A DNA stretch of 41,359 bases from Octopus bimaculoides (taxonomy: Eukaryota): assembly GCF_001194135.2 (NCBI RefSeq), contig NC_068982.1, positions 128,266,959-128,308,317 on the forward strand, read 5' to 3'. Below the pieces are notes generated by a model. The model saw only the letters and a list, made by a program, of their open reading frames with translations. It had not been told where the DNA came from and ran no database searches. Position numbers and translations under genes: made by a program. Each line of letters opens with the position of its first letter. Positions within the stretch are counted from its first letter, which is position 1. Shown here one piece after another: positions 4,802 to 41,018 of the stretch.

Positions 4802-5200
4802 CAGGTGTGGCTGCATGGTAAGGTTTTGCTTCCTAACCACATGATTCTGGGTTTAGTTCCACTGCTTTTCATTTTGGGCAAAAGTCTTCTATTATAGCCT
4901 TGGGTGGACCAAAGCCCTGAATGGATTTCATAAATGCAAACTGAAAGAAACTTGTGTGCATGTGTGTGTGTGTGCATGTCTCCTTGATATCGCATAGTAG
5001 TTGAAAACGAATGTCTCCTTCATTCAGGCAGTGTCCTTTGTTCCTAATCTTCTATAAAAAAAACATGTCTGGTCATGGAAAAATATTACATTACTTGGAA
5101 ACAGTTAAGTGTTGATAACAGGAAGGGCATCCAGCTGTAGAAAACCTGCCTCAGCAAAATTCAGTCTGACCCATGCAAGCATGGAGAATGAATATTGAAA
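4802..5200 (+). mobile_element. SINE family B (family A head with an RTE-type 3' tail)
   Basis: Same tRNA-like head as family A, ending GAAGGGCATCCAGCTGTAGAAA...GACCCATGCAAGCATGGAG. Related copies at about 7728-8135 and 8922-9345. Confidence 0.7.
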
Positions 5201-5360
5201 CAATGATACAGATGATATATATACATACACATATTATATATATGTGTGTGTGTAGATATACACACACATGTACACATACATAAACACACTCTACAAGGAA
5301 AAAATTCAAAGAAAATTCAAAGAAAACCATAGCTGTAAACTGACTGTAGATTACACTCAC

Positions 5361-8921: not shown

Positions 8922-9345
8922 GTTGCTTCACAACCACAGTGTAGTTTCTAATTTGCTCCTGCTACATGGCATTGTGGGCAAGTGTCATCTACTACAACCT
9001 TGGGCTGATCAATACTTTGAGAGTGTAAAAAGGTAGCCAAAATCTGTATGAAAGTTCATCTGTATGTGCGTGTTAGTGCAGTTCCATTTGTGCTTTGTTG
9101 CTTTCACACTGTATAAAATAATGTCACTGATGCATAGGTAGTATCACTCTTCACCTCCATTGCAAATATGTGTCTACCTGTCGAACAGTTATAATTCAAA
9201 ATACAATGGGACTAAGTACATTACTTGGAAATAAGTAAAGTTTGGCAACAGGAAGGGTATCTGGGTATAGAAAAACTGACTCAGTAAGTCACATCCAAAC
9301 CAGGCTAGCATGGGAAAAGCAGGCATTAAAACGACGATGATGATC
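8922..9345 (+). mobile_element. SINE family B, degraded
   Basis: Same head. Tail ctagcatgggaaaagc...ttaaaacgacgatgatgat. Confidence 0.6.
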
Positions 9346-9734
9346 ATCATCATCATTGCTGTTAAGAACTCAGGACTGCATAACAATTATTCTGATGGTA
9401 CAAGAAAAGAATTTTATGGAAATAATACAAAAGCATAGTCCCTCTTCTAAATGAAATCAACATTACAATAAACACCAAGACAGACTCAGAAGAATAGGCC
9501 CTTTAACATATATATCTGAGGAATAATGAATCTTATGTAAAAAAGCAATAAAATAAAATAGGTAATACTTTTTTTTAAAAGAGAAAATAAAAGACACTCG
9601 CATATAAAACTGCTTCCACAGCCAATGTCATGTAAAAGGCATACAGAACACTCTGTGAAGTGGCAGGTGTTAGGAAAGGCATCCAGCCATAGAAACCAAA
9701 GTAAAACAGACATTGAGGCTTGGCACAGTCCTCT
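9341..9734. repeat. Source copy of a ~394-bp inverted duplication
   Basis: Reverse complement matches 11565-11959 with about 5 substitutions, one 2-bp indel and one extra GAT unit. Confidence 0.95.
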
Positions 9735-9829
9735 AGCTTGTTGGCTTTTATCAAACCATCCAACCTATGCCAGTATGGAAAACAGATGCAAATCCAGAGA
9801 ATGGCAACTTGACTGGCATAAAATCAGTC

Positions 9830-10000
9830 ACACACTACAACCTCTGGCCAATCATGTACTGCCACCTCTTTTTGCTTTGTCTATCAGTACTATTATGGCC
9901 TCTGTTCCTCAGAAGTGACTGATCAAGAAATCCTTTCCTGTAAGCATCAATCTGCAACTTTCAGAGGAAGCTTAAATCTCACTGACACCACCAGAGAGCC
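9830..10000 (+). mobile_element. CR1/Jockey-type LINE 3' fragment
   Basis: LQPLA...YYYGLCSSE remnant. DNA motif ctattatggcctctg is shared with about 18250-18262 and the minus strand of 26076-26090. Confidence 0.55.
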
Positions 10001-11099
10001 TGCAAAGGAACCATGGACACTGCTTCTTCCTCCAGACTGTTTGCTTAAGAAGCTTGCTTTGCATCATAGTTTCAAGTTCATTCCCATGGGGTTTCAGGCT
10101 GAGCCTCACAGCCCAGTACTTTGGGAAAGTGTCTGCTATTATAGCCTAAGGTCAACCAATGCCTTGTAAATTAATTTGGTAGATGCAAACTGCGAGGAAG
10201 CCCATTGTGTGCATGCGTGTATATGTCCATGTGTGTATATGTGCATGTGTGTTACACATCGCCAATTAAGAACCAGTGTTGGTTTGTTCATGTCACAAGA
10301 GAATAAGTACGAGGCTTGAAAAGAGAAATAATTACTGGGACTGATTTGTTTAACTAAAACCCTTCAAGGCAGCACCAGAACATGGCCGCAGTCAAATGAC
10401 AAGCAAGTAAAAGATATGCTTATGTGAACATGTAATAATAAAGCTAAGTATTTAATAAAGAAAAACAAAGCTAATTTCAGAGGAATTTGAACTCAGAACA
10501 TCAAGAGTCATAACTAAATACAATAAGATGCTCTGACGAGCCTATCGATCCACTTGTCCTGAGAGTAGAGTATAACTAACAAGTGACTGGTTAGCTTGCA
10601 GTGTTAATTCAAATGCTTAGCTGCCAGCAACTGTACTAATGGTTACTGTGCAAAAAAATCATCCCATGTTAACTTCATCATGCTTAGACATCTGCAAACA
10701 GTTGGATATTTTAGTTAATTACAAGAAACATTTATAACAAAGCTCAGTGAACAATAAGTTAGAACCTTGCATTACTTTTGAGATAACAGATTACACACAA
10801 AAAGATGGTAGGTGAATGTAACCTGTCTAAATTTGTAAAAGTACTGATAGGTGTAGACATGGCTGTGAGGTTGAGAAGTTTGCTTTACAACTGTGTGGTT
10901 TAGGGTTTGGCCCCAGTGTGCTACTTTGCGCAACTGTCTTCTACCTCACATTGACGAATGTCTTCTGAATAACCTCACATACAGATAGATTAATAGATAC
11001 ATACACATAGTGAAATGGTAGATATTTTTTTTTTAACTTCCCGTTTTTCACATGGTGAATTGTAATGAAAAATATAAAAAAAGAAGGAAAGTTCTTTTA

Positions 11100-11455
11100 T
11101 TGTTTCATTCATTTACTTGTTTCAGTCATTTGACTGCGGCCATGCTGGAACACCACCTTTAGTTGAACAAATCAACCCGCGGAGACTTATTCTTTGTAAG
11201 CCTAGTACTTATTCTATTGGTCTCTTTTGCTGAACCGCTAAGTTACGGGGACATAAACACACCAACATTGGTTGTCAAGTTACAGTGGGGGGACAAACAC
11301 AGACACACAAACATATATATACAATGGGCTTCTTTCAGTTTCTGTCTGCGAAATCCACTTACAAGGCTTTGGTCGGCCCGAGGCTATAGAAGAAGACACT
11401 TGCCCAAGGTGTCACACAGTGGAACTGAACCCAGACTTATGTGGTTGGGAAGCAT
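11100..11455 (-). mobile_element. SINE family A
   Basis: Collinear with 576-981. Confidence 0.85.
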
Positions 11456-11557
11456 GTGCCTATAAAATGCGCAAAAGTTTTATGTTGGACAAAAATTTTA
11501 ATGTTTTTATGAAATAATATATTTACCTTTTTGACCGGTTTTACTAGCACTAATCAT

Positions 11558-11957
11558 GACTAAGAGAGGACTGTGCCAAGCCTGAATGTCTGTTTTACTT
11601 TGGTTTCTATGGCTGGATGCCTTTCCTAACACCTGCCACTTCAGAGTGTTCTGTATGCCTTTTACATGACACTGGCTGTGGAAGCAGTTTTATATGCGAG
11701 TGTCTTTTATTTTCTCTTCTAAAAAAAAGTATTCCCTATTTTATTTTATTGCTTTTTTACATAAGATTCATTATTCCTCAGATATATATGTTAAAGGGCC
11801 TATTCTTCTGAGTCTGTCTTGGTGTTTATTGTAATGTTGATTTCATTTAGAAGAGGGACTATGCTTTTGTATTATTTCCATAAAATTCTTTTCTTGTACC
11901 ATCAGAATAATTGTCATGCAGTCCTGAGTTCTTAACAGCAATGATGATGATGATGAT
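11558..11957 (+). mobile_element. TSD-flanked insertion copied from 9341-9734 (putative local retrocopy)
   Basis: CACTAATCAT occurs at 11548-11557 and 11958-11967. The insert ends in ATGATGATGATGATGAT. Confidence 0.75.
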
Positions 11958-12480
11958 CACTAATCATAATAAAGAGAAGACAGCAGATAACTGAGCCCTG
12001 ATGGACTTCTATCAGTGTGTTAAAGTCCTTACTAAATTCATAGTTAACTCTCACCTTACTGACTGCACATCTGTACAAGGCCTGCATAGCCCTCACAAGC
12101 CACAAGGAGGAATATGGTGAGACTGGTTAAGAATATTAGGCCTCAACAACGATATACTGCTCACTTCTAAGTTTCACCAACTACAGTGAATATGCTTCAC
12201 TGATGCAATGTAACAAGATTGAAACTTGACTGTTGCATTCACCAGTTGGTTATAAAAGACCCATCCTAACTGTGTTATCTATATTATTCCAAAACTTTAG
12301 ATTAGCTAACATTGAACTTTTAAGTTGCTTTTAGATCTGAAACATGCTCAGAGGGATTTTTTTTTTCTTCTAATTGCAAGAATAATCTCAGTTCTATATT
12401 TAAGAGATGAGGAATTATGTACATTATTTACGGATATTTACATTATTTGACGGATATTTGTTCTCATCCTGTTTGTTGTT

Positions 12481-12526
12481 AACACAATGTTTCAGCTGAT
12501 ATACCCTCCAGCCTTCATCAGGTGTC
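12481..12526 (-). ncRNA. Minimal type I hammerhead ribozyme motif (left pLTR)
   Basis: GACAC-CTGATGA-A-GGCTG-gagggtatat-CAGCT-GAAAC-ATT-GTGTT. Confidence 0.65.
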
Positions 12527-12671
12527 TTGAGGAAATTTCGAACCTGGGTTCTCATTCCTAAGGTATTTTTCGATATTATTATTATTCAGGTCACTGCCTG
12601 GAAACGAACTCGGAATCTTGGGGTTAGTAGCCTGCACTCTTAACCACTATGCTATATGCCCGTGGGCAATT

Positions 12672-12881
12672 ATGGAGAGAATTTTAGGGAAAAATGGAGA
12701 CCACCTCCCCCTGTGGGATGAAGTTAAAATAATAGATAGAGAACACCACTGGAAAATATGAAAACTAAAAGAAGCAGCACACATGCTAGGACACAACAAC
12801 CTCCTAAGCAGACAGAGTGCAGATATGAGTAGTATATGGGAACTGGTATTAAGGAAGGATAGGAAAATATTAGATTTATAA
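12672..12881 (+). pseudogene. Penelope GIY-YIG endonuclease C-terminal remnant
   Basis: One open frame except a single TGA where Arg (CGA) is expected, consistent with CpG decay. Stop TAA at 12879-12881. Confidence 0.8.
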
Positions 12882-12914
12882 GCCCTAAAATTCACCCCAT
12901 AATTAATTGCCCAC

Positions 12915-12990
12915 GGGCATATGGCGTAGTGGTTAAGAGCACGGGCTACTAACCCCAAGATTCCGAGTTCGATTCCAGACAGTGACCTGA
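12915..12990 (+). promoter_or_regulatory. tRNA-derived Pol III type 2 promoter inside the pLTR (mirror copy on the minus strand at about 12590-12660)
   Basis: A box TGGCGTAGTGG (12922-12932), anticodon-like GGG-CTACTAA-CCC, B box GTTCGATTCC (12967-12976). Confidence 0.7.
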
Positions 12991-13052
12991 ATAATAATAA
13001 TAATATCGAAAAATATCTTAGGAATGAGAACCCAGGTTCGAAATTTCCCCAT

Positions 13053-13095
13053 GACACCTGATGAAGGCTGGAGGGTATATCAGCCAAAACGTGTT
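13053..13095 (+). ncRNA. Minimal hammerhead ribozyme motif (right pLTR, mutated)
   Basis: GACAC-CTGATGA-A-GGCTG-gagggtatat-CAGCC-aAAAC-GTGTT. G12 is mutated to A and there is a short deletion near the cleavage site. Confidence 0.55.
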
Positions 13096-14011
13096 AACAA
13101 CAAACAAGATGAGGACAAATATGTCAAATGTAAATAATATAGAATAATCTCAGTTATTCATTTCTCTAATATTACTTGTGAGAGACTCCATTGTAAGTAT
13201 ACTTAGCATGCAGAATGCTATCTAGAGGTAACTCCCTTCAGATCTACTGAGGAAAATAGTTCACCTTGTTTTTCAGTAAGTTAACTCTGTAGTTAACATG
13301 CTCCTATATAAGGTACTCTGTATGTGCTGTCCCAGCATCTTTACAATATAAATCCTTTTATTCTTTTATTAGTTTCAGTCAATGGACAGCAGTCATGCTG
13401 GGGTACTGTCATCAGAGGTTTAGCTACATATATTGATCCCTAAACATCACATAGTACTTGTTTTCGCAATCTCTATCACTTAAATGATTATGTTCACCTT
13501 GGCATAAAGGGACATAAAGACAGAATAAATACCACAGAGTATTTTAGTGTGATGCACTAATTTTTCTGCAAACCATCAATATAAACACACATTTTATGCA
13601 TATATATCAGCATGTACGTATATGCGTCTGTATGTGTAGACAGTATTTTCATGTTAATATTTTCTTGTAATGAGGCATACACAATTTCCCAAGTTTTAAT
13701 AGTGCAAATGCCTGCATTAAATACAACATTGAACACCTAATGCAATTAGCATCTCTTTTCTCTTGTAGATTTCCACTTGAAATTAACATTTTTTATGATG
13801 TTCAAAGATCTGTTTGACTATTTCATATCAGCCTTATTTGCAAGAACAAAATCTTTGTACATTAATATAATCAATCACAGTGAAAATAAATGCATAGTAA
13901 ATAAGTTCATTAAGGCATTGCATATTGCTCCAAGATTAAATGAATGCCTTAAAATTTTTTATTAGAATAGGACCCGTAAAAGAAAGAAAAAGAGACCACA
14001 AGGAACAACTG

Positions 14012-14270
14012 TTTCTTCTGATGACACACTTAAGTAAACATGGTCTCTATGCAATTAGATACACAACATAAAGAGCTGAACTTAAAACTTTACCCAATCA
14101 GAACCATCTAAGAGGTTGCCATTTGAAGTTTATTTTTAAATTCAATATTTTCTCAAACGGCAACTTCTTAGAGAAGGTTCTGATTGAATACAGTTTTAAG
14201 TTCAGTTCTTTATGCTGTGTATGTAATTGCATAGAAACCATATTTACTTAAGTGTGTCATCAGAAGGAAA
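14012..14270. repeat. Long hairpin / foldback element
   Basis: Arms 14012-14126 and 14153-14270 (about 115 bp) are reverse complements with about a dozen mismatches, mostly transitions. Loop is 26 nt. Confidence 0.9.
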
Positions 14271-19684: not shown

Positions 19685-19770
19685 NNNNNNNNNNNNNNNN
19701 NNNNNNNNNNNNNNNNNNNNNNNNNNNNNNNNNNNNNNNNNNNNNNNNNNNNNNNNNNNNNNNNNNNNNN
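19685..19770. other. Assembly gap (N)
   Basis: 86 N. Confidence 1.
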
Positions 19771-20234
19771 TCAGCAGATCAGACTTAATTCCCCATCAGT
19801 CTTCTTCAGTGATGTGCACATTAATGAAGACTATGTGAAGCACAAACTTGGCTGCCAAACAGCATCACATTTCAGACACTGGCACCATTCCCTCAGTAGA
19901 ATGAACAAAGAAGAAAACCAGTTGTCACTAGCAAAATCACTAGTTTACACAACCTGCGACTTCCAGCCCCGCCCACACACACACCACGTTTGATTTTGTT
20001 TTCCAAAATAAGGAAAAGTATTAATTGAATTAAAATAGCATCTTATATTTATATAGAAGCATAAATCAAAGAGTTATTGCCAAACAATACAAGTAATAAA
20101 CGTTGAAGTATAATCAAAATAGATACATTTGAATTTCTTAAACAGACATGTAAATTACATGTATAACAATTATACATCTACAATTACATACAAATATGTG
20201 TGCATAATTACATGCACAACACTGCTTTTATATA

Positions 20235-20470
20235 TCATCGTTGTTTAATGTCTGCTTTCCATGCAGGCATGGGTTGGACAATTTGACTGAGAATTGGCAA
20301 GTTGGGAGGCTGCACCAGGCTCCAATCTCATCTGGCAAGCTTTCTACAGCTGGATGCCCTTCCTAACACCAACCACTCCAAGAGCATAGTGGGTGCTTTT
20401 ACGTGCGATGGGCACAGGACCCAGTCAGGTGGTACTGGCATCGGCCACGCTCAAATGGTGCTTTTTACGT
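20235..20470 (-). mobile_element. RTE 3' UTR / RTE-tailed repeat
   Basis: Same terminus as 77-420. Confidence 0.8.
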
Positions 20471-20693
20471 GCTTATTATGCATGTAAGTACACGCCAGCA
20501 TGAAAGATGGAAATTGAAAACTGTTGATGATATATACAATAGACATGATTGTGTGGTCAAGAAGTTCACTTCCCAGTCCTATGGTTTCAGATTCAGTACC
20601 ACTTCATGGCACTTTGGGTGAGTATCTTCTACAGTAGCTACATGCAGACCAAAGCCTTCTGGGTGAATTTGGTAATCAAAAACTGAAAGAAGC

Positions 20694-22708: not shown

Positions 22709-23195
22709 CATACAAATATATTAAGCGTGTATATGTACATGTGTGTGTGTGTGTGTGAGTACATATATGCTAGTTTTACATGTTTTCTCTATGCCTGAAT
22801 GGGTTGGATGAATATATTATTGAGACAATGTTGTACAGCTTGATGCCCTTCAGGTCTCTAACTCTCACTTATTTTTCAAGTAAGAGATGTCTTATTTCTT
22901 ATATCTAAGAAGGTAGGAACCAAACTAAACAGACAAGTTGCTGACAGAAGTGGAAACAACACCACCACTCATAACATCTTTCATGGAGCATTATTGTAAA
23001 CAGATACATACATACATATTTATATATTGCTTGGATAGCCTTCGCTTTTTTTCTCTCAAAATGTTTTTTTAACCCAATATTTATTCACTATTATTTATAA
23101 CTTTATCTATTTCGAGTTCAACTGTTAAAAACATATATAGATAGGGAGAGAGGGAGAGAGAGAGAAAGTGAAAGAGACACACACACACAGACACA

Positions 23196-23196
23196 T

Positions 23197-23230
<34 letters not shown>

Positions 23231-23479
23231 ACATCGTTTAACGTCCGCTTTCCATGCTAGCATGGGTTGGACGATTTGACTAAGGACTGGTGAAACCGGA
23301 TAGCAACACCAGGCTCCAATCTAATTTGGCAGAGTTTCTACAGCTGGATGCCCTTCCTAACGCCAACCACTCAGAGTTTAGTAGGTGCTTTTACGTGTCA
23401 CCTGCACGAAGGCCAGTCAGGCGATACTGGCAACGGCCACGCTCGAAATAGTGTCTTTTATGTGCCACCCGCACAAGCC
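23196..23479 (-). mobile_element. Young RTE 3' end with a long (GAT)n tail, running into a gap
   Basis: (CAT)n at about 23197-23230 followed by the conserved terminus and tandem units. Confidence 0.85.
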
Positions 23480-23683
23480 NNNNNNNNNNNNNNNNNNNNN
23501 NNNNNNNNNNNNNNNNNNNNNNNNNNNNNNNNNNNNNNNNNNNNNNNNNNNNNNNNNNNNNNNNNNNNNNNNNNNNNNNNNNNNNNNNNNNNNNNNNNNN
23601 NNNNNNNNNNNNNNNNNNNNNNNNNNNNNNNNNNNNNNNNNNNNNNNNNNNNNNNNNNNNNNNNNNNNNNNNNNNNNNNNNNN
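23480..23683. other. Assembly gap (N)
   Basis: 204 N. Confidence 1.
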
Positions 23684-29355: not shown

Positions 29356-29458
29356 TTAGTATTATGTGATATTTTTTTTTAATGTTGCAAAAAAACTGTT
29401 TTGTAATATTAAAAACAAATCAATAATTTTAGACCAAACAAAAATAAAATCAACTTAC

Positions 29459-30202
29459 TTTGCTTTTTGTAAATATCCTCAGTTTCCTTCTTTATTCGTG
29501 AAGAAGAAGAATATATGGAAGACGTATCAGAATCTCTGCTAGTTTCAAAGGCTGAAATTCCAGATCCTCTTCTAGTTTCATAAGATGAAATTCCAGAATC
29601 TCTTCTGGTTTCAAAGCCAGAACGGCCAGAATCCCTTCTGGTTTCAAAGCCAGAAAGTCCAGAATCCCTTCTGGTTTCAAAGCCAGAAAGTCCAGAATCC
29701 CTTCTGGTTTCATAAGCTAAATTACCAGAATCCCTTCTGCTCTTTCGACTGGAATCTTCAAATAAAGAAGTATAATCCGATTGTGAAGTCCTCGTATCAG
29801 AAGAAGTATAAGAAAGATCAGAATCTCGACGGGAGTCCTGTTGACTTCGAAAAGAATAGGAACCAGATTGCTTTTGGGAATGTCTTGTGTCATATGAGGA
29901 CAAATTCGAGCTTTGATTATCTGAAAAGTATGAACCATAGGAGTCCTGAACATTTCGGACATCAGAAGCATGTGAACTGGATCCTTTGTAATCTGAAGAA
30001 TAAGAATCCTTTCTTCCAGATCTGTAAGGTATGTAAGATGATTCAGATTCTTGTCTTCTTGTTACATCAAGAATAGATTCTTTTTTATTAAGGTCCCAGT
30101 CTGAATCTCTATCAAAAGATGTTGAAAAATGGTCTTTGGATCCCCTGTCACTGGTATATGCGGTTTGAACATCTGATTTACTTTCCGATGAGGATATTCC
30201 GC
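29459..30202 (-). CDS. 744-nt Ser/Arg/Asp-rich low-complexity exon with 11-aa ETRRDSG repeats
   Basis: Lies in the 284-aa ORF 29409-30263. Acceptor ctcttacttcatctccag|GC and donor CAAA|gtaagt. 744 nt = 248 codons, phase 1/1. Confidence 0.85.
29530..29745 (-). repeat. Coding 33-bp minisatellite (about 6-7 units)
   Basis: Unit GAAACCAGAAGGGATTCTGGACTTTCTGGCTTT is present twice exactly and degenerates outward. It encodes ETRRDSGLSGF. Confidence 0.9.
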
Positions 30203-30524
30203 CTGGAGATGAAGTAAGAGAATATTGATAAGAGAGTTTTCGGTTTGTGTGATACATTGTCAAAGATTCAATGAAAACTTCCTATATTCAGATTACACTA
30301 AAATCCAATAACAGTACAAATCAATCAACCATAGAAAGAAAAAAAATATACATATAAATTATTATAAACTGCTGCAATATTTTTCTTTCTCTGAATTTTC
30401 AACCAAATATATATCGTATTTTTCTTTTTAAAAGTGCAGAACTCAACAGTGACAATAACAGAATCCAAAAAATCCAGCAAGTTGCAACTACAAGTTACTG
30501 TTATTAGCAGGTGAGCACAAGAAC

Positions 30525-34311: not shown

Positions 34312-34314
<3 letters not shown>

Positions 34315-34383
<69 letters not shown>

Positions 34384-34457
34384 GAGAGAGAGTGAGAGAG
34401 AGAGTGAGAGAGAGAGTGAGAGAGAGAGTGAGAGAGAGAGTGAGAGAGAGAGTGAGA
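34315..34457. repeat. Compound microsatellite, (GA)n then (GAGAGAGAGAGT)n
   Basis: Read directly from the sequence. Confidence 0.95.
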
Positions 34458-35369: not shown

Positions 35370-35737
35370 CTTTTTTGTTTGAGTGTGATCGTTGCCAGCG
35401 TCGCCTTCCTGGCACTTGTGCCGGTGGCACATGAAAAGACATTCGAGTGAGGTCGTTGCCAGTGCCGCTGGACTGGCTCCTGTGCAGGTGGCACGTGAAA
35501 TACACCATTTTGAGCGTGACCGTTGCCAGTACCGCCTGACTGGACTTTGTGCCGGTGGCACATAAAAGCACCCACTACTCTCTCGGAATGGTTGGCGTTA
35601 GGAAGGGCATCCAGCTGTAGAAACTCTGCCAAATCAGATTGGAGCCTGGTGTAGCCTTCTGGTTCACCAGTCCTCAGTCAAATCGTCCAACCCATGCTAG
35701 CATGGAAAGTGGATGTTAAACAATGATGATGATGATG
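35370..35737 (+). mobile_element. RTE 3' UTR with three ~65-bp tandem units and a (GAT)n tail
   Basis: Units GAG(T/C)G...CGTTGCCAG...GGTGGCAC...AAA, then the conserved terminus. Confidence 0.85.
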
Positions 35738-35918: not shown

Positions 35919-36035
35919 GAGAGAAAGAGAGAGAGAGAAAGAGAGAGAAAGAGAGATTAAACTAGTAGTGGGGGAGGAAGTACAGAGAGTGTAATAGCTA
36001 GAATAAGAATAGGAAGAGATTCAGAGAGCTTTTAT

Positions 36036-36775
36036 CTCTGTTGGTTACAAAAGTTTTCTTTCTCCAAGTGAAAGGAAGATTGTATGATGCATGTATACGG
36101 ACAGCAAGTCTACATGATAGTGAGACACAGGCCCTGAATGCAGAGGACATGCAAAGGGTAGAGAAGAATGAGGCCAGTATGCTCTTCTGGATGTGTAATC
36201 TCAGTGTACAAGTTCGACAAAGTCCTAGTGTACTGAGAGAGGAGTCAGGCATAAAAGGAATGGTCACTGTGTGCAAGAGAGAAGATTGCACTGGTTTGGT
36301 CATGTAATGCAGATGGATGCCGACAGTTCCATAAAGAAGTACTGGTCTCTCAAAGCAGATGGAACACGTGGAAATGGGAAAACATGGGACAAAGTACTGA
36401 AGGACAATCTCAGGATATTGAACCTTTCATACAAGATGACAAAGGATCGAGATGCCTGGCGCCTTACTCTACTCAAGAAGACCCATATTCAACAGCAGAA
36501 GCGTTAAGACCACTCCGCGTAGTGAAGATGACTACCCTGCAAGAGCCCTGTGCTGGTACCACATAAAAAGCACTTGAGCCAGTGCCATGTAAAAGTATTC
36601 ATGTAGTGCCACATAAATGCACCCAGCACATGCTGTAAAGTGGTTGGTGTTAGGAAGGGTATCAATCAGTAAAAACCATGTCAAATCAGACTGGAGCCTG
36701 GTGCAGCTCTCCAGTTTGCCAGCTCTGGTTAAACCTTCCAAACCGTGCCAGCATGGATAACAGACATTAACTGAT
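36036..36775 (+). mobile_element. 5'-truncated RTE-clade LINE
   Basis: LQVKGRLYDACIRTASLHDSET...RRLHWFGHVMQMD...KTWDKVLKDNLR...MTKDRDAWRL followed by the 3' UTR. Confidence 0.9.
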
Positions 36776-37023
36776 ACACACACACATGTATGTTGCTTAA
36801 TGTTGGATGAATGAGAAAGAAGTACTCAATACATGTCGTGGAGGATATAGTTTTTTTTTTTTTAATTTATTAAAAGTGAAGCTGGAGGTTTGTCTTATGA
36901 TTCATGTTTCACACCAAAGCAGACTTTGCACACAAATAGTAAACAAGCATTGATGATTGTGGTCTTCCATTCAAACATATCCAGACTAGGGGAAATACTA
37001 CTTTGCTTGAAAATAGGTGAAGG

Positions 37024-37271
37024 NNNNNNNNNNNNNNNNNNNNNNNNNNNNNNNNNNNNNNNNNNNNNNNNNNNNNNNNNNNNNNNNNNNNNNNNNNNNN
37101 NNNNNNNNNNNNNNNNNNNNNNNNNNNNNNNNNNNNNNNNNNNNNNNNNNNNNNNNNNNNNNNNNNNNNNNNNNNNNNNNNNNNNNNNNNNNNNNNNNNN
37201 NNNNNNNNNNNNNNNNNNNNNNNNNNNNNNNNNNNNNNNNNNNNNNNNNNNNNNNNNNNNNNNNNNNNNNN
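37024..37271. other. Assembly gap (N)
   Basis: 248 N. Confidence 1.
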
Positions 37272-39929: not shown

Positions 39930-41018
39930 TAGCTTTTGTGTGCAGCAGATGCACAGGGGGCAATAAACACCACAGATGCTCAGAAAACAGATTCCATCAC
40001 ACTCCAGTGGGAGAAACTAAAAGTAATTGATAGCTTCTGCTACCTAGGTGACCAAGTTAGTAGTGGGGGTGGATGCTCAGAGAGTGTTACCACTAGCAAA
40101 GTTTAGAAAGCTTCTACCCCTAATGGAGAAAAAGGGCCTCTCGCTCAGAGTGAAAGGTAGATTGTACAATGCATGTGTGCGAACTGCCATGCTTCACGGC
40201 AGTGAAATATGGGCCATGACTGCAGAGGACATGCATAAGTCCGAAAGAAATGAAGCTAGTATGATTGGCTGGATGTGTAATGTCAGTGTGCACACATGAC
40301 AGAGTGTAAGCGTGCAAGAGAGACATTTTGCGCTGGTATGGTCATGTACTACGGATGGGTGAGGGGAGATGTGTGAAGTGCCACTCCCAAACAGTTGAAG
40401 GAATCCGGAGTAGAGGTAGACCCAGGAAGACATGGGATGAGGTGGTCAAGCATGACCTTCGAATGTTGGGCCTCACAGAGGCAATGACAAGAGACCGAGA
40501 CCTCTGGAGATATACTGTGACTGCAAAGAGCCGGCAAATAAAGTGAGTTCACAGCTGTATCCTACACCAGTTTCGCATAACCAACCCCAGCCCATTCAAA
40601 AGTACCTTGGATCATAACGTGACCTGCTGTGCTTGAGGAGACTTATTGAGTTAAGTACATCAACATCAAAATGAAAATCAAAAGGAAATTATAGTTGTGA
40701 TACCCATGCTGGTGGCACGTAAAAAGCACCATTCGAACGTGGCCAATGCCAGCGCCACCTTGACTGACTTCTATGCCAGTGGCACGTAAAAAGCACCAAC
40801 CGATCATGGCCGTTGCCAGCCTCCTCTGGCCCCTGTGCCGGTGGCAAGTAAAAAGTACCCACTACACTCAGAGTGGTTGGCATTAGGAAGGGCATCCAGC
40901 TGTAGAAACACTACGAGATCAGACTGGAGCCTGGTGCAGCCTCCTGGCTTCCCAGACCTCAGTCGAACCATCCAACCCATGCTAGCATGGAAAACGGATG
41001 TTAAAAGATTATGATGAT
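39930..41018 (+). mobile_element. 5'-truncated RTE-clade LINE with complete 3' UTR
   Basis: DSFCYLGDQVSSGGG, LSLRVKGRLYNACVRTAMLHGSE and RWYGHVLRM...RGRPRKTWDEVVKHDLR...MTRDRDLWRY across frameshifts, then tandem units and an ATGATGAT tail. Confidence 0.92.

Follow-up and report, generated by a model that had tools for sequence, protein, structure and literature searches.

An inverted duplication 1.8 kb from its donor in an octopus genome, with the anatomy of microsatellite-tailed retroposition and a palindrome at its end

LINEs and SINEs of the RTE clade, as Malik and Eickbush reportedly described in 1998, retropose with microsatellite tails. Where LINEs are stringent in recognizing their templates, unrelated RNAs are rarely copied, and non-element DNA next to a LINE can be moved through a read-through transcript, as in 5' and 3' transductions and orphan transductions. 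DNA-based routes can also place a copy close to its source: FoSTeS/MMBIR and templated break-repair insertions draw on a local template, often with inversion, microhomology or filler at the junctions and breakpoints at hairpins, and in template switching a short flanking duplication is possible when synthesis resumes behind the point of departure. In L1 tailless retropseudogenes (Noll et al. 2015, PMC5322556), a LINE copies a cellular RNA devoid of the usual tail at its end; priming is internal, at single-stranded loops, with short complementarity to the target (2-18 nt), the insertions carry target-site duplications (TSDs), and nuclear RNAs are among those copied.

The octopus locus described here resembles each of these systems in part. 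If its template was RNA, it is close to the tailless retropseudogenes, although those come from relaxed, poly(A)-type L1 elements and are dispersed, whereas the octopus copy would involve a putative microsatellite-tailed, apparently stringent LINE and an intron RNA as template, and it lies 1.8 kb from its source. With RTE-clade retroposition (Tay et al. 2010, PMC2887409; Nishiyama and Ohshima 2018, PMC6007223) it has in common a simple-repeat 3' end, slippage in the number of repeat units, a truncated 5' end, a TSD and a tail that overlaps the target by 1-2 nt, and its upstream T run resembles the T stretch that precedes RTE TSDs by ~10 nt, but the repeat is all that it has in common with the LINE/SINE 3' region. 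As in LINE transduction, non-element flanking DNA is found at a new site; unlike transduced sequence, the mobilized piece has no recognizable LINE or SINE 3' end, only the microsatellite. An exact 10-bp duplication together with a correctly oriented retroposon-type tail, finally, departs from what FoSTeS/MMBIR would lead one to expect.

Table 1. Positions of the duplicated segments, their junctions and the related features of the window
Feature	Position	Strand	Remarks
SINE copy A, old 3' part	9217..9344	+	related subfamily (cf. 5087-5216); end ...aaaacgacGATGATGAT
Perfect palindrome, 16 nt, GATGATGATCATCATC	9336..9351	none	centre between 9343 and 9344
Donor segment	9343..9734	copy's sense is minus	repeat search, blastn, alignment
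SINE copy B, old	9596..9790	+	~75% identical to family copies; decayed tail
Left TSD copy, 10 bp, CACTAATCAT	11548-11557	+	
Filler GACTAAG, 7 nt	11558-11564	+	5' junction
Inserted copy, 393 nt	11565..11957	sense is +	5'-truncated within SINE B; end (ATG)5AT
Right TSD copy, CACTAATCAT	11958-11967	+	
Internal coding exon, host gene	29459..30281	-	acceptor atatag/G, donor A/GTAAGT; open frame ~274 codons
Fullest SINE copy in window	35378..35737	+	three 64-bp head modules, core, hairpin CCATGCTAGCATGG, ...gttaaacaat(GAT)4
Older LINE 3' end, 5'-truncated	35963..36790	+	colinear with 39933-41018
LINE 3' end, 5'-truncated	39933..41018	+	ORF C-terminus to stop 40544-40546

Within the 41-kb window (the whole stretch of Octopus bimaculoides DNA that was analyzed), positions 11565-11957 are an inverted copy of 9343-9734, at 98% identity and a distance of 1.8 kb. 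An inverted-repeat search returned the arms as two blocks, 9338-9655 with 11642-11959 (318 nt, 98%) and 9650-9734 with 11565-11649 (85 nt, 96%), and blastn aligned them over 397 columns at 98.0% identity (E=0); the inverted copy of about 98% identity noticed in an earlier, sequence-only reading of this DNA is thus borne out by both searches. No other duplicate in the window is as young, the runner-up pair being 88% identical. Seven differences separate the arms, namely C/G at 9715, a CA deletion at 9657-9656, T/C at 9625, 9578 and 9382, A/C at 9563, and one ATG unit that the right arm has in addition. The SINE consensus assigns the change at 9715 to the right copy and that at 9625 to the left copy, and such drift in both copies since the copying implies an event that is old and real. 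At the rate of PMC13282606, if it holds here, their divergence of ~1.3% suggests an age of ~1-3 My. No A>G difference of the ADAR type separates the copies when they are read in the sense of the RNA; the three T/C differences run in the opposite sense, and at least one of them arose in the donor.

These differences also bear on whether the pair is an artefact of assembly, that is, a collapsed or duplicated haplotype or a chimeric read inverted in a gapped scaffold. The assembly is scaffolded, with three N gaps in the window (19685-19770, 23480-23683 and 37024-37271), but the closest of them is 7.7 kb off, the copy has unique sequence on either side, together with filler and an exact duplication of 10 bp, and the seven differences are divided between the copies as independent drift predicts. 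We consider an artefact very improbable.

The donor segment is made up of (ATG)4, a stretch (9357-9595) that is single-copy in the window and ~140 bp from the start of an old antisense SINE (9596-9734), and its homology reaches 9341 if the CA in common with the target duplication is counted. The middle part had earlier been put at ~270 bp and not recognized as a repeat; this length has to be corrected, since the SINE starts near 9596 and leaves ~240 bp that recur nowhere else in the window. SINE copy B runs ~56 bp past 9734, where the homology to the right copy ends, and when six further members of the family are aligned with both loci, the left one tracks the SINE consensus to ~9790 while the right copy departs from it at 11564. 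The right copy thus breaks inside an old SINE that the left locus continues, which identifies the left locus as the donor; the sequence-only reading was right both about the cut in mid-SINE and about the direction of copying.

As that reading also held, the right copy and not the left one is bracketed by a 10-bp direct repeat, CACTAATCAT, which is perfect and falls exactly at the homology borders (its left coordinate had been given one base off), and the right copy does carry seven extra nucleotides at its 5' junction and one extra repeat unit. Direct 10-mer repeats at a spacing of 395-405 bp occur at 7 of 40343 window positions. The first two bases (CA) of the right duplication copy could equally be donor-derived, which would amount to 2 nt of microhomology. 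At the left copy, no 8-mer or longer word from 9295-9360 recurs in 9650-11600, and an insertion of the left copy with its own TSD was rejected on that ground. A single DNA transposon with 394-bp TIRs (9338-11959) was likewise rejected: there is no direct repeat outside the arms, only the right arm is TSD-bracketed, and the left arm's SINE runs inward beyond the homology. The filler is no more like the donor continuation (9742-9735) than chance allows (p=0.15), and copying of the filler from there or from 9210 was rejected, ~0.6 chance 7-mer matches being expected. Upstream of the insertion, a T4 run lies at 11539-11542 (P-9 to P-6) and a T5 run at 11528-11532 (P-20 to P-16); random positions of the window have a T4-type run so placed in 9-11% of cases, and a single site was scored. 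No marks of splicing, editing or poly(A) addition were seen in the copy, and a processed mRNA retrocopy was rejected, the copied sequence being non-coding, SINE-bearing and free of poly(A). A search with the reconstructed empty-site peptide gave no candidates. Next to the insertion, 12126-11968 on the minus strand encodes what we take to resemble a reverse transcriptase fragment (...VRVNYEFSKDFNTLIEVHQGSVICCLLFI...); Pfam and a PDB sequence search of this segment returned no match.

Elements with (GAT)n tails are present in the window, as claimed before, but their attribution to RTE elements holds in part: most carriers are SINE copies, plus two truncated LINE 3' ends. There are at least eight SINE copies, and LINE and SINE have ~300 bp of 3' sequence in common, including a hairpin (CCAUGCUAGCAUGG). 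The LINE at 39933-41018, a candidate relative of the autonomous partner, has a 3' UTR of ~470 bp, with the 'SINE' sequence inside it (40707-41018) and the tail gattatgatgat at its end, 41007-41018. In the older LINE the ORF C-terminus extends to ~36504 and is followed by a SINE-like 3' region with a decayed tail, a 3' UTR of ~270 bp. Both are thus unlike the extremely short simple-repeat 3' UTR that serves to recognize the RTE clade. Pfam found no match in either ORF C-terminus (35963-36504 and 39933-40543); the motif LRWYGHVLRM...RGRPRKTW...DRDLWR presumably resembles the C-terminus of Bov-B. The tail of the right copy, (ATG)5AT, adjoins the right TSD and has the same repeat in the same orientation as the SINE copies and LINE 39933-41018. 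Family copies are followed by ATAT in six of eight cases, the right-copy insertion by CACT; at the other SINE copies, age has erased any clear TSD or target motif.

Two features of the donor were not part of the earlier description. One is the palindrome GATGATGATCATCATC, in which SINE copy A, tail-to-tail with the donor microsatellite, brings its (GAT)3 up against (CAT)4; the right copy terminates 1-3 nt beyond the centre of this palindrome, which is predicted to fold into a ~12-bp hairpin as RNA or as single-stranded DNA. The other is the missing LINE/SINE 3' hairpin region: 9345-9595 has no similarity to the SINE/LINE 3' region and no comparable hairpin (the fold of the donor 3' end has z = +0.3 to +0.9).

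It might be thought that the ~240-bp unit with its (GAT)n is itself the 3' end of an unrecognized LINE or non-autonomous family, so that the right copy would be an ordinary retroposon, either re-inserted in 5'-truncated form from a host read-through transcript with 140 bp of upstream flank (a 5' transduction) or derived from a third, master locus. A short minus-strand ORF (9362-9478) stops 6 nt before the microsatellite, and repeat libraries for genomes of this kind are incomplete (PMC13282606). However, 9357-9595 has no other copy in the 41-kb window, against at least eight of the SINE, the left copy has no flanking direct repeat, the reading frames of the unit are broken and AT-rich, and a rare family would have to put two 98% identical members 1.8 kb apart. 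Protein searches with the unit's ORFs, a weak negative, point the same way: the concatenated ORFs had no match at E<=10 in 5.8 billion proteins, where the SINE-derived part of the query was also matchless, and the 75-aa ORF had none among 1.84 billion representatives, in collections that hold almost nothing from this organism. An ordinary retroposon is, in our view, unlikely. Exact look-ups gave no record for the ORF across the donor breakpoint (9625-9918) or for that across the 3' junction (11932-12105), and metagenome scans with a 28-mer of the unit and a 27-mer of the empty site gave no matches. Rfam (E<=1) assigned the unit to no RNA family, with only a weak mir-297 match in a (TG)n-like tract outside it, and a tRNA search found none; a known structured RNA gene, such as an intronic snoRNA, was accordingly rejected as the template.

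The strand of the copied sequence can be set against that of a host gene. A conserved exon (29459-30281) lies 17.5 kb upstream of the duplicated segments in the direction of transcription and puts the gene on the minus strand, which supports the earlier proposal that it was the host gene's sense strand that was copied. The inverted pair probably sits within an intron.

We lean, with confidence a little short of even, toward target-primed reverse transcription by the machinery of the resident (GAT)n-ending LINE/SINE family as the origin of the right copy. An endonuclease would have nicked the bottom strand at TTTACTAG/CACTAATCAT, ~6-9 nt downstream of the T4 run, and the freed 3' end (...ATTAGTG-3') would have base-paired, over 2-3 nt, to CAU where (GAU)4 meets (AUC)3 in a minus-strand donor transcript, most simply unspliced host pre-mRNA, with the loop of the microsatellite-palindrome hairpin as the priming site. 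Reverse transcription would then have covered 393 nt, gaining one repeat unit via slippage, and halted within SINE B, here antisense; seven filler bases would have gone in as the 5' end was joined, and the duplication would stem from a second nick 10 bp off. The RNA intermediate, its nascent and local origin, the priming inside it and the identity of the enzyme are the parts of this route that we infer.

Several observations favor retroposition. A perfect 10-bp duplication at the homology borders is rare by chance, (ATG)5AT beside the 3' duplication matches the resident tails, arbitrary truncation and filler at the other end are as at non-LTR 5' junctions, and what was copied is the gene's sense strand. 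The T4 run, for all its background frequency, is placed like the RTE insertion signature, a T stretch ~10 nt upstream of the first TSD base that is undocumented in cephalopods (PMC6007223). The extra repeat unit fits slippage at initiation, which is known for RTE and L2 (PMC2887409, PMC3747384). Other observations weaken the case. The common 3' region and its hairpin are the hallmark of stringent template recognition, and the donor has neither; CACT follows the insertion where ATAT is usual for the family; and a landing 1.8 kb from the source is very unlikely in a genome of gigabase size, as we assume this one to be, unless the template was tethered. Moreover, the palindrome centre lies at the copy end, where a stall of DNA polymerase is also to be expected, the locus is a single case that carries no RNA-specific mark, and the clade of the LINE is a candidate assignment.

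A DNA-templated insertion, by replicative template switch or break repair (FoSTeS/MMBIR- or SDSA-like), accounts for nearly the same facts, and a single locus cannot separate an RNA from a DNA template. By this route a 3' end would have come off its template at 11557, been extended by a few bases and invaded the inverted donor, copying it from 9734 to ~9343; stalled at the (GAT)3(CAT)4 hairpin, it would have returned 10 nt behind its departure point, where CACTAATCAT would be re-copied and so duplicated. Inversion and a spacing of 1.8 kb are typical of such events and explain the short distance better than retroposition does, the copy ends just past the centre of a palindrome able to form a hairpin, one junction has the 2-nt microhomology and the other the filler, and no feature demands RNA, the donor being devoid of a LINE/SINE 3' recognition region. 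Less usual for a template switch would be a clean 10-bp flanking duplication, a breakpoint at the one microsatellite in the orientation that matches resident retroposon tails, a copied strand that is the transcribed one, and a T run upstream of the nick that fits an RTE-type endonuclease, although none of these points is decisive. We regard a DNA template as a serious but somewhat improbable alternative.

Should target-primed reverse transcription have made the right copy, the locus may stand for a more general process, in which an otherwise stringent microsatellite-tailed LINE, possibly of the RTE clade, starts reverse transcription inside nascent intron RNA at a hairpin-loop (GAU)n made by an abutting antisense SINE tail, and pastes the copy a few kb off in the same intron, creating poly(A)-less local inverted duplications and long dsRNA stems in pre-mRNAs. 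We think this possible, with the balance of our judgment somewhat against it. If the template was RNA, strict LINEs would sometimes copy host non-coding RNA locally, at exposed tail-like microsatellites, and this would be a source of inverted duplications missed both by repeat annotation and by retrogene screens that rely on poly(A) and intron loss. With DNA as the template, a template switch at a microsatellite palindrome would have mimicked retroposition, which calls for caution with retrocopy calls based on TSDs.

By either mechanism, a 393-bp, 98% complementary pair 1.8 kb apart should form a long dsRNA stem in pre-mRNA. A-to-I editing is heavy in coleoid cephalopods, and such a stem would be a natural substrate for it, with a possible effect on splicing or small-RNA production.

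The inverted duplication proposed by the sequence-only reading was borne out by both a repeat search and blastn. The repeat search placed the duplication in two adjacent inverted segments, 9338-9655 paired with 11642-11959 (318 nt, 98%) and 9650-9734 paired with 11565-11649 (85 nt, 96%), split by a 2-nt indel only; in blastn they form a single alignment of 397 columns at 98.0% identity. This left/right pair is by far the most similar in the window, the runner-up being 88% identical. Aligned base by base, the two copies differ by five substitutions (9715, 9625, 9578, 9563, and 9382), and the right copy lacks a CA (9657-9656) and has one additional ATG unit, the latter as that reading had claimed. 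The right copy is indeed bracketed by an exact direct repeat, CACTAATCAT, at 11548-11557 and 11958-11967, although its left occurrence lies one base to the left of where it had been implied, and the 7 extra nucleotides described at the 5' junction (GACTAAG) are present as filler at 11558-11564. Direct repeats of 10 nt with this spacing occur at only 7 of 40343 window positions, simple repeats counted in. No direct repeat was found around the left copy; no word of at least 8 nt from 9295-9360 recurs within 9650-11600.

When the left locus and right copy were aligned with six further window copies of the SINE family, the left locus matched the SINE consensus from ~9596 to ~9790, while the right copy matched it only as far as the equivalent of 9734 and then passed into filler and duplicated target, so that the left copy is the donor and the right copy is cut in mid-SINE, as had been proposed. 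This donor SINE (SINE B) is old, ~75% identical to other family copies, and its private changes also occur in the right copy. The source of the right copy is therefore the left locus or an identical sequence, and an independent SINE insertion is ruled out. Polarized by the SINE consensus, the change at 9715 falls on the right copy and that at 9625 on the left, indicating that both copies drifted after the event, which argues against an assembly artifact. We consider such an artifact very improbable, even with three N gaps in the window, which lie further from the pair. The event is a real, directional, target site duplication (TSD)-flanked insertion with a retroposon-type tail. It is unlikely that the pair instead belongs to an unrecognized repeat family, as the central ~240 bp of the donor (9357-9595) has no other copy in the window; open reading frames of this unit had no match in large protein collections, a weak result that says little on copy number because the SINE-derived part of the query was also unmatched. 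In Rfam and tRNA scans the unit matched no known RNA gene, and nothing was retrieved by exact open reading frame look-ups, by a search with the empty-site peptide, or by two metagenome scans.

The (GAT)n-ended elements of the window are copies of one SINE superfamily, whose 3' end reads ...CCAACCCATGCTAGCATGGAAAGCGGACGTTAAACGAT(GAT)n. The head of one copy, at 35381-35568, is built from some three 64-bp modules in tandem (GTGGCACATAAAAGCACC...TGCCAGTGCCGCCTGACTGG), and module number varies among copies. A scan of all open stretches in the window found two LINE 3' ends, one of which terminates in gattatgatgat at 41007-41018. The entire body of the abundant (GAT)n-tailed SINE is included in the 3' untranslated region (UTR) of each, and LINE and SINE form a pair that shares the (GAT)n tail and ~300 bp at the 3' end. 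The earlier statement that RTE elements here end in (GAT)n is thus essentially right about the tails, in the SINE copies and in the second LINE 3' end, but its RTE assignment is putative: the LRWYGHVLRM...RGRPRKTW...DRDLWR of the LINE C termini resembles the Bov-B/RTE C terminus, and a Pfam search of both C-terminal fragments gave no match. RTE elements typically have an "extremely short" 3' UTR (PMC2887409), in contrast to the 270 to 470 bp of the LINE ends in this window.

Repeat features and other structures in the window
Feature	Position	Strand	Details
Perfect palindrome	9336-9351		16 nt; GATGATGATCATCATC; centre between 9343 and 9344
SINE superfamily copies, (GAT)n-ended	35378-35737, 23190-23479, 20234-20472, 9217-9344 (SINE A) and others		
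LINE 3' end, 5'-truncated	35963-36790	+	ORF C terminus 35963-36504, then SINE sequence colinearly
LINE 3' end, 5'-truncated	39933-41018	+	ORF C terminus 39933-40543, stop 40544-40546, then SINE sequence colinearly
Second abundant SINE (GTCATTTGACTGCGGCCATGCTGG...)	10060-10420	-	
Second abundant SINE	11090-11450	+	
Open stretch at insertion site	11968-12126	-	reads ...LWLVRAMQALYRCAVSKVRVNYEFSKDFNTLIEVHQGSVICCLLFIMIS
Inverted pair	12435-12689 / 12883-13136		tRNA-like SINE head; 262 bp, 88%, ~190 bp apart
Large imperfect palindrome	14012-14269		258 bp, 84% identical to own reverse complement
Tandem array	34314-34457		(GAGAGAGTGAGA)12; 12-bp unit, very regular, 99% identity
N runs (assembly gaps)	19685-19770, 23480-23683, 37024-37271		two adjoin microsatellite-rich SINE copies

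The open frame at 29409-30263 (minus strand) represents a real internal exon (29459-30281), with an AG acceptor at ~30282 and a GTAAGT donor at 29458-29453. The frame is also open in a contig of a related organism (Logan SRR11869385), whose product shows 90% amino acid identity; that contig is 92 to 97% identical over most of the exon, except in the repeat tract 29551-29650, and is gappy and less similar immediately downstream. Large protein collections, very sparse for this organism, yielded one relative only. Within the exon, a 33/66-bp tandem repeat (29528-29739, minus strand, 6.4 copies) encodes repeated SGFETRRDSG(L/I) and is the place of greatest length difference from the related contig. 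The duplicated segments lie 17.5 kb downstream of the exon on the transcribed strand, which makes the next intron their probable location, although the window shows no downstream exon. The two copies of the second abundant SINE lie between the arms in opposite orientation and add inverted-repeat potential to this stretch of probable intron. The insertion site itself is in an open stretch that we take to resemble the reverse transcriptase motif G-x-x-QG-x-x-LSP-LLF, an identity for which Pfam, a homolog search, and a PDB sequence search gave no support. The inverted pair 0.5 kb from the insertion is a foldback/MITE-like element or else consists of two SINE copies in opposite orientation.

We tentatively ascribe the right copy to target-primed reverse transcription of an RNA template, a reading to which we give slightly less than an even chance. 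It is favored by the TSD with the right kind of tail adjoining its 3' occurrence, the arbitrary 5' truncation with filler, the 2- to 3-nt overlap of tail and target, and the copying of the transcribed strand, and the additional repeat unit is consistent with slippage in unit number (PMC2887409; PMC3747384). A T4 run 6 to 9 nt upstream of the nick, of a kind present at 9 to 11% of random positions, resembles the RTE-type insertion signature known from plants, lizards, and mammals (PMC6007223). The donor microsatellite is half of a palindrome in which the (GAT)3 tail of SINE A, an old copy on the plus strand, adjoins (CAT)4 in a tail-to-tail junction. The copied segment has its end at 9343, or at 9341 with inclusion of the CA common with the target duplication, 1 to 3 nt past the palindrome centre, and the donor transcript folds into a ~12-bp hairpin with this end point in its loop. 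Priming within an RNA at a single-stranded loop is documented for L1 "tailless retropseudogenes" (PMC5322556), a precedent for the internal priming proposed here.

A hairpin-forming palindrome is also an expected polymerase stall site, and a DNA template switch at this palindrome is a serious rival, which we judge somewhat less probable. Almost every feature of the insertion could also be obtained from a template-switching DNA polymerase: microhomology and filler are expected at its junctions, and a flanking duplication would follow if synthesis resumed 10 nt behind the departure point. Its strongest argument is locality, the donor being inverted and merely 1.8 kb off, whereas random landing would almost never be this close, so that under retroposition one must further assume that the template was nascent RNA of this locus. 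Against the template switch stands the strongest argument for retroposition, namely, that the breakpoint falls exactly at the only microsatellite that matches, and in the only orientation that matches, the tail of the resident retroposons, together with a clean 10-bp TSD.

The copied piece carries none of the 3' region common to LINE and SINE, including the stem-loop CCAUG-CUAG-CAUGG, and RNA folding found nothing notable at its 3' end (z-scores of +0.3 and +0.9). Extensive 3' sequence common to a LINE and a SINE marks "stringent" template recognition (PMC3747384), and retrocopies of unrelated RNAs would then be expected to be rare. This lack and the palindrome are new relative to the sequence-only reading; of its RTE retrocopy of nascent intron RNA, the directional, TSD-flanked insertion and the retroposon-type tail stand, while the RNA intermediate, the RTE identity, and the nascent-intron-RNA step are inferences. 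If retroposition from RNA is the true explanation, this single locus would represent a variation on known internal-priming retroposition.
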